From: Tetramitus jugosus
Taxonomy: Eukaryota > Protista > Heterolobosea
Assembly: GCA_937625935.1 (NCBI GenBank)
Contig: OW569357.1
Location: 434,001-498,000 of the forward strand
Reading direction: 5' to 3'
DNA length: 64,000 bases
Made by a program: the position numbers and the translations under genes. How positions within the stretch are numbered: position 1 is the stretch's first letter; each line of letters starts with the position of its first letter. Below are positions 15,314 through 20,135 of this stretch, in pieces. The notes beneath the pieces were generated by a model, which saw nothing but the letters and a program-made list of their open reading frames with translations, did not search any database and was not told the origin of the DNA.

Positions 15314-16126
15314 TTACTCTTCTTGTTCTTGATTGACATCGAGGGACATTGCCTGTATGACCCACTTCTTCAAATTGACTTCAGTCAGAGTCTTCATCAT
15401 TCTGTGATCTTCATCTTCCAAATACACTTGAACGTTCTGATTGTCGACACGGGATCTGGTTGCATAGTCTACAGAGTCTTGACATGGAACCATATTGTCC
15501 TTTAGACCATGGACAATAACAGTCTTTGGAATGGTCCTTGGAACAATGATCTCCTTTGTAGACTGTCCCAATCTTCTTGCCCACTCCTCTTGAGCAGGTG
15601 CCAACATGAGCAATGGATTCTTGTAAAAGTATTTTTGAGCGCGAATAATTTCGGCGACAACAGCACCACCGTAACCGCCCGCAACAATCAAATCAGGCTT
15701 ATAGTTCTTAATGTACCTTCTCTGTGTGTCCAGTGATTGTTCAAACGTTTGTCTCAATACTTTTCTCATGGCCCATCGCACCAAAAATGCCAATGCTGTT
15801 CCCGATGCCAACACAAACGCAATCATAGAGTACAATCGATTCTTCTTTATACCGAGAAGATAGGCAACATAGGCAATGACACCTGCACCACCCAATGAAC
15901 CAAGATTGACCAAAGCTTTTCCTCTTTTCAATGTCTCAACTGTTCTCATATCAGGGCACTTTGTTCCTGGGAAGACTCTTGTGAGCATTTGAGCTCTTCT
16001 GTCTCTGTTGGAACCTTCCAATCCGTGAACATAGAGAATTTTTAGTGTTTTTAAAATGTCGTCGACAGTGGCGGTAGTGGTAGTCGTGTCGCTGTTGTTC
16101 TCAATGGAAGAAGATGAAGAAGACAT
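15314..16126 (-). CDS. Membrane-associated alpha/beta-hydrolase-fold protein with Gly at the nucleophile position
   Basis: LYVHGLEGS; two hydrophobic segments; nucleophile elbow DLIVAGGYGG; VHGLKDNMVP (Asp) and EDEDHRM (His). Confidence 0.75.
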   Translation of the reverse strand: MSSSSSSIENNSDTTTTTATVDDILKTLKILYVHGLEGSNRDRRAQMLTRVFPGTKCPDMRTVETLKRGKALVNLGSLGGAGVIAYVAYLLGIKKNRLYSMIAFVLASGTALAFLVRWAMRKVLRQTFEQSLDTQRRYIKNYKPDLIVAGGYGGAVVAEIIRAQKYFYKNPLLMLAPAQEEWARRLGQSTKEIIVPRTIPKTVIVHGLKDNMVPCQDSVDYATRSRVDNQNVQVYLEDEDHRMMKTLTEVNLKKWVIQAMSLDVNQEQEE

Positions 16127-16430
16127 GGTTTCTAATTCGATTGATATTGTTCGTTGTGTGTTTTTTTTTCGTGATCTGTTTTTTTTCCGGCGAACCGAAC
16201 GGAAATTTAAATGGGAGAATTCGCAGCCATCTGATTTTTTCGATTGCTATGGATGTTTATCACAGACTGTTCAGATCTAACAAGCTTTGGAATTAGGATC
16301 TAAGGTCAGTTGAAAAGAAGAGTTGATATTATCGTGAATGAGTACTCAGTGTCTTTGGCATTGTGAACATCTTCCCACCGATGAAAAAGATGAAGTTCGA
16401 AGACTTAGTGCACTTCATTCCATTATCCTT

Positions 16431-18497
16431 TTACTTTATTTTCGAAATTAAGCGTAGGAAGGGCCATTCTACACGCTTTGACAAGAGTGAGCATAATAGA
16501 TGGTAGCAATAATGATGGCAGTTGTTGCTAGCAATCATGTACGTTTCTGACCCTCCCCATTTGACATCAGATGTTGGATCCGGTATGCACTGTCCAGATA
16601 GAACAGATAGATCCAATACAGAGTTTGTTGATGCTCTTTGGAATGCGTCACGAGGAGTCACACGCAACCAATGGATTTGAGCCAGAGGTGCTTCGACATC
16701 TGTTTCAGATGACAAATCAGTAATGTATCCCGCGCAGTTGGATGGCTCAGAGTAGAGTAGTGTTGGATTCGGTAGCACGTGTCTTCCATTGATTGTCCAC
16801 TCTGTCACAACTATGCAACCAGGAGCACCTAGTGCCAGCGCCTCAGCTGTTACTGAAGATTCAGGCCGCGCTCTCCGAGTCACTGCATCAAGCACACCAA
16901 ACTCATAAACAATTACTTTGTTGCCGTGCTTGTGTGCCAAGAAAGTGTGGAAGCTGTACAGTGGATTCTTTGGACATGTGAACCATCCTAGATTGATTTC
17001 TGAGTTTGGAACACCATTCTTCCAACAACCAACATACAATCCACTCGGCCAAAACTCTTGTATGTTGTACCATCGCTCACTGTCTCTCATCTCGAACATG
17101 TGACTGTTAGGACATGCATCAAACAGCTTGTATTCTGTTGGCAACTTGAAAACCATATTTCCTCCCTTGTACTCGTGCAAGTAACCAAACTTTACAATTG
17201 TGTCCGAAGCGGATGTCGCCGTTGTTTCGCTTGACGTTGTTTGCTCGCCTCTCTTGCTTAGTTGCTGTTGCACATGAGCTGCAATTTCATTAAATGTACA
17301 ATATCCATCTGGATGCTGCGTGTACCAGGTCGTTGATAAAGCATCACTCAAACAATCAATCATGGGACTGATTTCTCGTCTCTGTTGCACCGATTCCTCA
17401 GCAACGCCAGATGCAAGCACGCATTTACACTCTTCCTCCATTGATCGCCGTAGGTTACTTCTCGAATCCACTCTTGGAGATTGCCTCTTATTATTATTCA
17501 TATCGATAGAATTATTGTTCTCTGCTGAATACAAGTTTCTTGAGAAGCAACAATCGAACACAAGAGTCACATGTTTCGCATCACAATACTCTTCCACAAC
17601 ATTCAACAAATCTCTATAGTACAGTGCATTATGGACCTTGTTTCCTGCTGATTCATCACCCCAGCGATACCCATGACAACAAAAGTACTCTTGCGTACCC
17701 GAATTCTTCAATTGCTCGACTTGTGAATGACCACACAACACAATCATTACTCTTGCATTGCGTTGATGAGCATTATTCTGTTGAGCAGCATTGACATCCA
17801 TCTTGCCATTGTTCACCACAGTAGATAAACTAGTTCTCACTTGTTCGAGAACAGTAGAAGCACTCGATACTTGATCATCGAGCATGTACACGACTCGAGG
17901 GAATCGTTCACTATAGTGTCCCAGTCCATTCTCCAACATGTGACCCAATCGTCTCACTGCACTCAACGAACCATTCAATTTTTCCATGTTTGCATAATTT
18001 TCACATGCAATCAATATGGCAATCGACTCATCATATTTACAATTTTCATGATCATTATTACTACTATCACTACTATCACTACTACTACTACTACCAACAC
18101 TAACACTAGCACTAACACTACTATTACTATTACTACTGCTACTACCAGTGTGATCCTTGTTGTGATTCACATCCATTTCTTCACTACTTTCATTAACATT
18201 CACTTCTAATTCTTCTGCTCCTTCTTCTTGAACTAATTCATTCAGATTCTTCTTATGGTGATGATTCTGGTTGTTGTTGTTGTTGTTATTGTTGTTGTTC
18301 GTTTGACTCTTTCTTCGATGTCTCTTATGGTTGTTATTTTTAGATCGGGTGAGTTCTGGATGATTCAACAAGTGATCGATTGCAGCGTGAACAGATGAAT
18401 AATGAGTGGCTTTGAGTGCCTTTTCGGCCAAGTGACGAGAGAAGCCCATTTCCATCATGGTCTCAATTGCTTGATTCATTTTATCTGTATTCGTCAT
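16431..18497 (-). CDS. UBA + caspase-like (C14) + PPPDE/DeSI-like permuted papain-fold protein
   Basis: UBA MMEMGFSRHLAEKALKAT..SVHAAIDHLL; C14 motifs AILIACENY..L.GS, MIVLCGHS, LVFDCCFS; C-terminal FHTFL...YEFG and YMIASNNCHHY. Confidence 0.72.
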   Translation of the reverse strand: MTNTDKMNQAIETMMEMGFSRHLAEKALKATHYSSVHAAIDHLLNHPELTRSKNNNHKRHRRKSQTNNNNNNNNNNQNHHHKKNLNELVQEEGAEELEVNVNESSEEMDVNHNKDHTGSSSSNSNSSVSASVSVGSSSSSDSSDSSNNDHENCKYDESIAILIACENYANMEKLNGSLSAVRRLGHMLENGLGHYSERFPRVVYMLDDQVSSASTVLEQVRTSLSTVVNNGKMDVNAAQQNNAHQRNARVMIVLCGHSQVEQLKNSGTQEYFCCHGYRWGDESAGNKVHNALYYRDLLNVVEEYCDAKHVTLVFDCCFSRNLYSAENNNSIDMNNNKRQSPRVDSRSNLRRSMEEECKCVLASGVAEESVQQRREISPMIDCLSDALSTTWYTQHPDGYCTFNEIAAHVQQQLSKRGEQTTSSETTATSASDTIVKFGYLHEYKGGNMVFKLPTEYKLFDACPNSHMFEMRDSERWYNIQEFWPSGLYVGCWKNGVPNSEINLGWFTCPKNPLYSFHTFLAHKHGNKVIVYEFGVLDAVTRRARPESSVTAEALALGAPGCIVVTEWTINGRHVLPNPTLLYSEPSNCAGYITDLSSETDVEAPLAQIHWLRVTPRDAFQRASTNSVLDLSVLSGQCIPDPTSDVKWGGSETYMIASNNCHHYCYHLLCSLLSKRVEWPFLRLISKIK
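18055..18145 (+). repeat. (ACT)n-type coding microsatellite (poly-Ser linker of the caspase-like protein)
   Basis: ctactatcactactatcactactactactacta...actaacacta repeats. Confidence 0.75.
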
Positions 18498-18740
18498 TTT
18501 CCTCCTGAGTCAACTCTTACTTTCAACACACACCAGTAAAACTCTACTTTTATTCTGTACACAAAAGAGTTTTGTTGATGGATCTGTTTTTTTTTTGGGG
18601 AGGTTTGGTGTTTGGTGACTTTTGTTCGTTCATTGTTGGTTGCCATGGCATCAACTATTTTTATCTCCAGAGATAAGCTTGAAAAACCAGTCAGGCAGGG
18701 TAAACTTCATAATGAACTTTGATCACACAATTCACAAAAG

Positions 18741-20135
18741 CTATTGTTGAGACTCCATAAAGAACTCCTGGAGGGCCTCTAGGTTTTTGGCAATGTAACT
18801 CTTGGAATCTTCATCTTGTTGCGAAAAGACATCTTGATGCTGGGAAAGAGGAAATTTCAAAGGGCTTGACATGGGGTGCCTTGCAACCTGGGGAGACCTC
18901 TTCTCTTGAATGTCACGAACAACTTTGATAGCAGACTTGGGTGAAGGTCTATTGTATTCGTGAGTGGTGTCCATACTAGATAGCTCCCGTACCTCGTGAA
19001 CAACCGGTTTGAAGAATGTAGGGGATGTTAACATGGACTTGAATATTCCTGTTATGATCAGTAAATCTGACTCATGTGCATAAAATTCGCTGCCGTAAGG
19101 TGTTAAGGCTGAATTTCCCTGTTGAAAAGAACCAATTGTGAGAACGTTTGAAACTGTTAGATCATAAGATGCTCCCATGCGTTGCATCACAGCATATTGC
19201 ACCTCTAAGCCATTCATTAATATTCCTGCCGTACAGCTTCTATGAATGCTACTGATGTTATTAGCAGCGGCTAACATAATATCTCCTACCATTTCTAACA
19301 TTTGACGATGCCTCTTTGTTACTACCTTGTTGTGCAACTTGGAATTCACCTGAATGATTACTACCATTGGCAATGGAGTGTTTCTTGCATGTGTTTGAGC
19401 AAAACCTCCTTCTTCTAATAGTCTACTTATTGTGTGCTCAATGAAACAGTCAATATACCTTTTCACTCTCGATACTGGCCCAAACAGTGATGGCAGATCA
19501 TTGCGCGATCCTGTGCTAGACTCGACCAAGGATAACGGTCCATAAACGGAACTCTTCACACTGTACTGGAGAGATAGCTCCTCGATCCAATCAAATGGGA
19601 CATCTGACTGACAAAATCGGCTATTGTCGATCTTTAGCCGGTACTTGTGTTTCTTTTCTGCAGCAAATGGTTGCGATTCCGAGTGCAAACTCTCATATTG
19701 ATCACTACCTACGTTGGGGTTAAAAAACTGTGTAGCAATAGATTTAGAATGAGTATAAGTTTGACACTCTGCAGGGAACATCCATTCTATTCACTTACAT
19801 ACCCTATTGAACACATACTCTTTCCGTACCAGGCATTGTCCATGTTTTAAGGGCTTTGGTTTCGGTATTGCTTCTTTGTCATCACAAATGACGTATTTGG
19901 CCAAAGCTTGTGTAGCTACTACTGTTCCTCCCATCGCTCTCTCAATCAAGTGTTTTAATTGTTCTTTGGAAGCGACAACATCCTTACTTGTCCTCGCTGT
20001 GTGGGTCGCATAGCCGAGGTGGTGGATATAAAATGTTTTACCTCTCAATGTCGTGGAGCTCTCATCCTTTACCATGTGATTGAGCACAAAGTGAACATGA
20101 TTCACAAAACACTCTTCTTCGCTGGGATCGCTCAT
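18741..20135 (-). CDS. BRCT-domain protein with C-terminal degenerate PD-(D/E)XK-like domain; predicted exons 20135-19803 and 19727-18741 (5' end uncertain)
   Basis: BRCT-like LRGKTFYI...LKHLIERAMGGTVV...KYVIC...LVRKEYVF. A phase-0 GTATGT..ACAG intron (19802-19728, 75 nt) joins the 144-aa and 346-aa ORFs in frame. Confidence 0.55.

Follow-up and report, generated by a model that had tools for sequence, protein, structure and literature searches.

The reverse-strand open reading frame (ORF) at 16431-18497 of the Tetramitus jugosus DNA analysed here (contig OW569357.1, positions 434,001 to 498,000, a stretch of 64,000 nucleotides hereafter called the window) encodes a protein that joins in a single chain, from the N to the C terminus, a UBA domain, a low-complexity linker, a caspase-like domain and a conserved C-terminal domain with invariant Cys and His residues. 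This order of domains had been put forward in a preliminary description of the sequence, and it holds in the family that we assembled around the protein. The combination of a UBA domain, a caspase fold and this C-terminal domain is not described in the protein libraries or in the literature that we searched, in agreement with the statement of the same description that no such protein was known to it. The architecture is new and is made from known kinds of domain, the C-terminal domain being at most a new family in a known superfamily. By a modest preference, we lean towards a ubiquitin-directed processing enzyme with two heads, in which the UBA domain would be coupled to a caspase fold and to a C-terminal thiol hydrolase. 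We also consider it rather probable, judging from sequence comparison, that with the C-terminal domain the permuted NlpC/P60 group gains a new and strongly diverged branch.

The family and its UBA and caspase-like domains

A word-indexed search with the whole protein retrieved one homologue, P0001, which has 571 amino acids, the same architecture and an identity to the window protein of 39% by BLAST, or 43% in a MAFFT alignment. When 1.84 billion representative proteins were searched exhaustively with HMMER, using the C-terminal domain as the query, only three matches were obtained: P0002, which is near P0001; P0003, of 536 amino acids, on a 24.7-kb JGI contig; and P0004, of 175 amino acids. 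A metagenome scan added one more full-length member, L008, in which the frame-0 ORF (nucleotides 112-1980) encodes a UBA domain, a linker, a caspase fold and the C-terminal domain. Thus, the succession of UBA domain, caspase fold and C-terminal domain is found in all five full-length members, the window protein included. For P0003, the public gene call begins too late, and the UBA domain lies upstream of it in the same frame (L006:258-368 (+)). At L007:1878-2750 (+), P0004 is a stand-alone C-terminal domain that adjoins an actin gene, and therefore fits what would be expected if the C-terminal domain were an autonomous module. In its public gene call, GT...AG intron sequence is taken for coding sequence, and the exon with the NNCHYY box is lost; both the WxRF and the NNCHYY part belong to this second exon (L007:2481-2747), and the two exons were entered in the alignment as separate rows, not joined. 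A possible ATG start of P0004 gives a protein beginning MGNLPF, that is, with Met-Gly. The viral and prokaryotic genome contigs that were scanned contained no relative of the C-terminal domain, and the gene neighbours of the homologues showed no synteny. The family is very small and is known only from contigs of amoeba-like eukaryotes from soil and water.

The UBA domain that had been recognised in the preliminary description covers residues 8-48 (18354..18476; like all features of the gene given below, on the minus strand) and is borne out by two Pfam models, both of which it passes: UBA_7 (PF22562) with 40.7 bits (E 2.2e-10; curated cut-off 27 bits) and UBA (PF00627) with 38.1 bits (E 1.3e-9; curated cut-off 22.4 bits). 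Its best sequence matches among PDB chains are the UBA domains from UBXD, Sts-1, USP5 and USP13. The domain is present in all five full-length members, and its MGF/hydrophobic loop reads EMGFSR in the window protein, P0001, P0002 and the L008 ORF. Behind it comes the Asn/Ser/His-rich low-complexity linker (residues 49-150; 18048..18353), which is visible in the translation and had been noted earlier as a poly-N/S stretch. Neither its length nor its sequence is conserved, as is apparent from the alignment with P0001 and from environmental length variants. Residues 57-63 of this linker form a basic patch, HKRHRRK (18300-18330 (-)), which lacks conservation in the homologues and could be a nuclear localisation signal.

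We accept that residues 155-415 (17253..18035) are predicted to form a bacterial-type caspase fold whose His-Cys dyad is intact, because the homologues pass Pfam Peptidase_C14 (PF00656) with this dyad invariant. Four homologues, which are 34-43% identical over the caspase domain, reach 32-45 bits where 21.4 bits are required and cover positions 2-193/208 of the 233 in the profile; that is, four of the five family members exceed the threshold. The preliminary description had read a caspase-like domain from the window copy, and its motifs are present at the positions that it gave; the homologues lie above the Peptidase_C14 cut-off, and it is the match of the window copy to this Pfam model that was not obtained. 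Similarly, with the NCBIfam model NF047832 ("caspase, EACC1-associated type"), the window copy reaches 30.7 bits (E 2e-7), while P0003 and L008 match over the full length with 51.1 and 48.0 bits, all of these values being below the cut-off of 140 bits. The generic caspase model of PADLOC matches P0003 and the L008 ORF, not the window copy. The window copy probably misses the Peptidase_C14 threshold owing to two Asn/Gln-rich low-complexity inserts.

The predicted catalytic residues are His257 (VLCGHS; 17727..17729) and Cys316 (VFDCC; 17550..17552), and the motifs around them, GH(S/A) and FDC, are invariant in the five members, the Cys motif having the form FDC[CYNH]. The His comes first, and a hydrophobic strand precedes each residue of the dyad (VMIVLCGH and VTLVFDC). 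In a profile alignment with a C14 protein of the same genome, which is not significant alone, GH and FDC fall on GHG and DSC, and SG..EES of a p10-like part falls on ISGCQDN. The catalytic Cys is followed by a variable Asn-rich loop (residues ~322-352; 17442..17534), at the position of the inter-subunit linker between p20 and p10. The length of this loop varies among the homologues, and non-synonymous changes and a 3-nucleotide deletion gather there in environmental variants. The AlphaFold2 model of the caspase domain, which was built from a four-row alignment that is too shallow, has a predicted local distance difference test (pLDDT) score of 46.4, and its Foldseek matches are at noise level. 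A PDB search with the caspase profile gave metacaspase-4 only (E 1.7), and the caspase segment alone found no homologue in the word-indexed search, owing to the length window of that search.

These features place the domain beside the bacterial-type caspases and orthocaspases (Peptidase_C14, NF047832), with which it shares the fold family, the succession of His and Cys after hydrophobic strands, the variable loop after the Cys and a strand of the form SG..(D/E)ES in the p10-like part. In addition, the EACC1 system likewise places a variable C-terminal domain behind the caspase (PMC7159879). In contrast to the NF047832 caspases, the members of the family score 31-51 bits where the cut-off is 140, have no known EACC1 partner, are eukaryotic and carry an N-terminal UBA domain; unlike metacaspases and orthocaspases, they have the Cys motif FDC instead of DxCHSG. 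The caspase fold is connected to the C-terminal domain by a Ser/Thr-rich linker (residues 416-435; 17193..17252), which is conserved in neither length nor sequence: in the alignment, it measures 20 residues in the window copy and is nearly missing from the homologues.

Identity of the C-terminal domain

The C-terminal domain (residues 436-688; 16434..17192) is the conserved domain of an orphan family with an NC box of the PPPDE/LRAT type. The preliminary description had seen a His that precedes an NC motif and had connected it with permuted papain-fold enzymes. Both elements, YSFHTF...YEFG and NNCHHY, are indeed present and invariant across the family, the second one in the form Y-x4-N-N-C-H. 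Four residues that are invariant in all six family sequences could make up an active site. His517 (16947..16949), the candidate catalytic His, lies in a predicted beta-strand (DSSP strand 79-89 of a low-confidence model); Glu532 of YEFG (16902..16904), 15 residues further on, is a candidate for the acid that orients the His; Tyr653 (16539..16541) stands seven residues ahead of Cys660; and Cys660 itself (16518..16520), in NNCHHY, is the candidate nucleophile and opens a predicted helix, where the invariant NNCH is aligned with NCNHF of PPPDE. For permuted NlpC/P60 enzymes, four catalytic positions have been published, and each of them has an invariant counterpart in the family. These positions are His38/Glu47/Tyr101/Cys108 in PPPDE1, His49/Glu64/Tyr115/Cys128 in YiiX and His49/Glu64/Tyr127/Cys154 in BcPPNE (PMC3142127), and His166/Glu183/Tyr258/Cys280 in Cln5 (PMC9012467). 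The Tyr-x6-Cys spacing is that of Tyr101 and Cys108 in PPPDE1, and a Glu at His+15 is found as His49/Glu64 in YiiX and BcPPNE. When 35 invariant residues were placed randomly, such a pattern arose in 1.1% of 200,000 trials with four spacings permitted per side, which is a post hoc count. The secondary structure of the model, again of low confidence, has His and Glu on consecutive strands (strand-turn-strand), and in it a short strand is followed by a helix with the Cys at its N-terminal end.

Profile comparison adds to this picture on the side of the Cys. Against a PPPDE profile made from two PPPDE proteins of the same genome and eight PPPDEs from databases, hhalign found the Y-x6-C-H helix with P 8.5e-4 when five rows were used, and with P 2.9e-4 and a probability of 40% over ~30 columns when seven rows were used. 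The real alignment scores 29.1-32.1, whereas none of 198 column shuffles exceeds 22.3, and the Cys-side part of every one of the five members beats 1000 of 1000 sequence shuffles. The RTE1/TMEM222 and LRAT proteins of the same genome, when compared with the same PPPDE profile, score 33.4 and 39.0 and match at the NC box only; therefore, weak linkage that is confined to the NC box is normal in this superfamily, and the recognised members of the clan are linked to the PPPDE profile by sequence at an equally low level. Like the permuted NlpC/P60 group (PPPDE/DeSI, YiiX/YaeF, LRAT/PLAAT, RTE1/TMEM222 and Cln5), the domain has the His before the Cys and NC-x-H-[FY] at a helix start. Unlike PPPDE, it is ~100 residues longer, has no similarity beyond the Cys helix, carries extra invariant Cys and Trp residues and is fused to a caspase fold and a UBA domain.

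Closer assignments were tried and rejected. As a Pfam PPPDE member the domain fails, since Peptidase_C97 (PF05903) gives 12.8-13.6 bits against a cut-off of 29.2, in two of the five members and over positions 101-126 of the profile only, which are those of the Cys helix. Membership of Cln5 was dropped as well, the family profile having given nothing against the Cln5 homologue of the same genome. A classical zinc module is unlikely, as there are no paired CxxC motifs. The MORN-like repeat of the preliminary description has to be withdrawn: MORN (PF02493) gave no match at E <= 10 with the whole protein or with its segments, and the single GLYxxCWxNG motif is a conserved element inside the C-terminal domain that is present in the stand-alone form too. 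The permuted papain fold that had been suggested for this part of the protein is retained with respect to the NC box, which matches as well as recognised members of the clan match one another, and to the invariant His, Glu, Tyr and Cys; it is not carried by similarity on the His side or by a Peptidase_C97 score above the cut-off.

Several points weigh against assigning the domain to the permuted NlpC/P60 group, and against a two-headed enzyme more generally. The argument from the tetrad is post hoc, and the His-side half gave nothing significant when compared by hhalign with the N-half of PPPDE and does not rise above shuffles against the PPPDE profile. The Peptidase_C97 score is far under the Pfam cut-off, and a PDB search with the profile of the C-terminal domain returned no PPPDE, LRAT or Cln5 chain. 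The AlphaFold2 model of this domain, from a five-row alignment that is likewise too shallow, has a pLDDT of 41.7, even lower than that of the caspase domain, and the fold searches made with these failed models (Foldseek against PDB, VIA-align wide and Atlas shape) returned noise only. The top Atlas row, obtained with the model of pLDDT 41.7, is a cluster annotated in part with TseH, an NlpC/P60 family (template modelling score 0.33/0.42). In feature searches of the Protein Atlas with the C-terminal domains of the window protein and of P0002 the values were 0.75-0.76, with a PPPDE cluster second, and these serve as leads only. Moreover, the further invariant residues Cys 491, 561 and 588 could indicate other chemistry or metal binding; altogether, the family of the C-terminal domain has five invariant Cys, as well as extra invariant Trp residues. 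On the caspase side, the window copy itself is below the Pfam C14 threshold. Finally, ubiquitin binding, substrates and activities are, for all members, what we infer from their sequences.

Proposed function and competing explanations

In the two-headed enzyme that we slightly favour, the gene product would be a cytosolic protein. Its UBA domain would bring it to ubiquitinated proteins or ubiquitin chains, and the caspase-like domain would then cut the polypeptide. The C-terminal hydrolase, with a putative active site formed by His517, Glu532, Tyr653 and Cys660, would strip an acyl-type modification from the same substrates, namely an isopeptide of ubiquitin (Ub) or a ubiquitin-like protein (Ubl), or else a thioester, the bond type established for PPPDE1/2. 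Either bond is a plausible substrate because of the activities reported for PPPDE enzymes, which have been described as weak deubiquitinases and deSUMOylases and as efficient S-depalmitoylases (PMC9012467).

With USP5 and USP13 the protein shares a UBA domain and a thiol protease in a single chain, the USP fold being unrelated. Its proposed working logic, a ubiquitin-binding module together with an endoprotease, is that of Ddi1/DDI2, in which a UBL domain, a retropepsin-like protease and a UBA domain follow each other and the ubiquitin-binding module takes the endoprotease to ubiquitinated substrates. Unlike the protein studied here, Ddi1/DDI2 is an aspartic protease of an unrelated fold, without a second hydrolase domain. 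Caspase-2 has been reported to bind poly-ubiquitin and to trim chains (PMC11567894); in contrast to our protein, it uses a region like a ubiquitin-interacting motif instead of a UBA domain and has no PPPDE-like partner domain.

Each head of the proposed enzyme can be questioned. The C-terminal domain could instead be a beta-rich binding or regulatory domain, possibly one that binds metal, with an NC box that is a product of convergence; in that case, the UBA domain would target a caspase-like protease that recognises its substrates through the C-terminal domain. We regard this as unlikely, while giving it more weight than the other alternatives. It would explain why the similarity to PPPDE spans only ~30 columns and why the N-terminal part of the domain performs no better than shuffles, and it would suit the five invariant Cys and a low-confidence model that resembles a beta-barrel, with weak lipocalin-like and Gid4/Gid10-like barrel matches (Z up to 4.4). 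However, these barrel matches are at noise level and come from a model with a pLDDT of 42, the domain has no metal motif of the CxxC type, the invariant His, Glu, Tyr and Cys show published spacings, and sequence comparison links the recognised clan members with no greater ease. The opposite arrangement, in which catalysis is left to the C-terminal domain alone and the caspase fold is a pseudo-protease that serves for scaffolding or dimerisation, appears to us very improbable. The failure of the window copy with Pfam C14 would fit it, and so would a Cys motif, FDC[CYNH], that is unlike the QACRG and DxCHSG of characterised caspases and metacaspases. Yet the His and the Cys are invariant although the members are merely 34-43% identical, and variants at or beside both residues are synonymous only.

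It is also tempting to speculate, along the lines sketched in the preliminary description, that the protein is a protease-effector switch, in which a ubiquitin-sensing UBA domain would lead to a proximity-activated caspase that cuts itself and so releases or licenses the C-terminal hydrolase as an effector of death or immunity. The caspase-effector defence modules of bacteria would thereby have a eukaryotic counterpart in one chain, a cell-death or immunity switch of amoebae: the UBA domain would sense danger or damage marked by ubiquitin, the bacterial-type caspase would be the licensing protease, and the orphan C-terminal hydrolase would be a latent effector from a new enzyme family. Bacterial EACC1-associated caspases come closest to the caspase domain, and the C-terminal effector regions of these enzymes vary (PMC7159879); it has been demonstrated in prokaryotes that proteolysis licenses linked effectors (bioRxiv 10.1101/2025.11.14.688446); and the C-terminal domain, as an autonomous module, is also found alone. 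Against this, the linker that joins the caspase fold to the C-terminal domain is unconserved and shows no conserved cleavage site, and the junction is nearly absent in the homologues; therefore, a conserved release site there is unlikely. If there were any self-processing, the variable loop after Cys316, at the p20-p10 position, would be a likelier site than the domain junction. Besides, the gene is single-copy and under ordinary purifying rather than diversifying selection. We consider such a switch improbable, and a defence role of the kind known from bacteria equally doubtful.

If the C-terminal domain of the two-headed enzyme is a permuted NlpC/P60 enzyme, two unrelated thiol-hydrolase folds would be joined to a ubiquitin reader. 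This would provide a simple test system for how caspase-fold proteases outside animals link to the ubiquitin system, a question that, to our knowledge, has so far been approached only via yeast and plant metacaspases and caspase-2. It would also add a new branch to a superfamily with a chemistry that is still being worked out and that includes isopeptidase, amidase, acyltransferase and S-depalmitoylase activities. Because its caspase part looks bacterial in type, the gene moreover bears on the transfer of parts of conflict systems into amoebae. The reach of these points is bounded by the size of the family, which is tiny and belongs to a few protists of soil and water.

Transcription, variation and occurrence of the gene

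In the ORF list of the window, the reading frame at 16431..18497 (-) measures 2,067 nucleotides. It is a complete, single-exon coding sequence for 688 amino acids, closed by a TAA stop (16431-16433), and the gene is transcribed as one unspliced transcript. The RNA evidence consists of assembled contigs, not reads from the sequenced strain; they derive from environmental strains that are 95-99% identical, come from four RNA libraries (three soil metatranscriptomes and one oligo-dT library) and were aligned with 15900-19100, a repeat at 18042-18150 being skipped by the mapping. The region 16425-18565 is covered by such contigs without joints. Contig X10, of 2,098 nucleotides, spans 16470 to 18565, and contigs X7 and X9 start at 16425 and 16428, end at 18041 and include both protease-like domains. 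The single transcript that had been assumed for this ORF is accordingly what the joint-free contigs show, crossing both protease-like domains and the entire frame. The intergenic flanks at ~16155-16424 and 18566-18698 have no RNA contig in any of the four runs; therefore, the signal acts like RNA, unlike contaminating DNA. Ahead of the stop, the final codons (AAA ATA AAG TAA) contain an AATAAA hexamer (16435..16440). Because RNA contigs from two libraries terminate at 16425 and 16428, that is, 3-6 nucleotides past the stop codon, our data suggest that the 3' untranslated region is extremely short and that the poly(A) signal lies within the coding sequence.

The environmental variants indicate what is maintained in the protein. 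Among the 33 substitutions listed in the ORF, 20 are synonymous and 13 non-synonymous, and these 13 replacements concentrate in three places: the low-complexity linker, the loop behind the catalytic Cys of the caspase domain, and the inter-domain linker, where the Ser/Thr-rich residues 416-435 hold four of them. Within the C-terminal domain, eight synonymous variants stand against one non-synonymous variant, and the sole variant of the Cys660 codon is silent. The variants at and beside the His and Cys of the caspase domain are exclusively synonymous, and the coding insertions and deletions in the environmental contigs are multiples of three. The gene is under purifying selection, and it is single-copy in its genome. 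The folded parts differ between environmental strains almost only synonymously. In-frame length variants are seen at 17497, 17800, 18195 and 18324 (-), in low-complexity parts, and comprise a 3-nucleotide deletion, two 12-nucleotide insertions and a 9-nucleotide insertion.

Sequence near-identical to 16300-18700, or to parts of it, occurs in metagenomes and metatranscriptomes of soil, groundwater, sediment and hydrocarbon samples from 15 studies. Because near-identical sequences are present in the runs of so many studies, the source organism or its near relatives are common and transcriptionally active in soils.

Two other genes of the same genome were noted in passing. The best canonical PPPDE (L003:223-1935 (-), on contig 29) encodes a protein of 570 amino acids with a Gly/Met/Asn-rich middle part and a long helical region at its C terminus, which may be a Cdc48-binding region of the PUL/PUB type. 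An RTE1/TMEM222-like protein (L005:1348-2190 (-), on contig 22; Pfam RTE1, E 2.5e-51) has an NNCHHF box like that of the C-terminal domain studied here, and its RTE1 domain is divided by a poly-His/poly-Thr insert.

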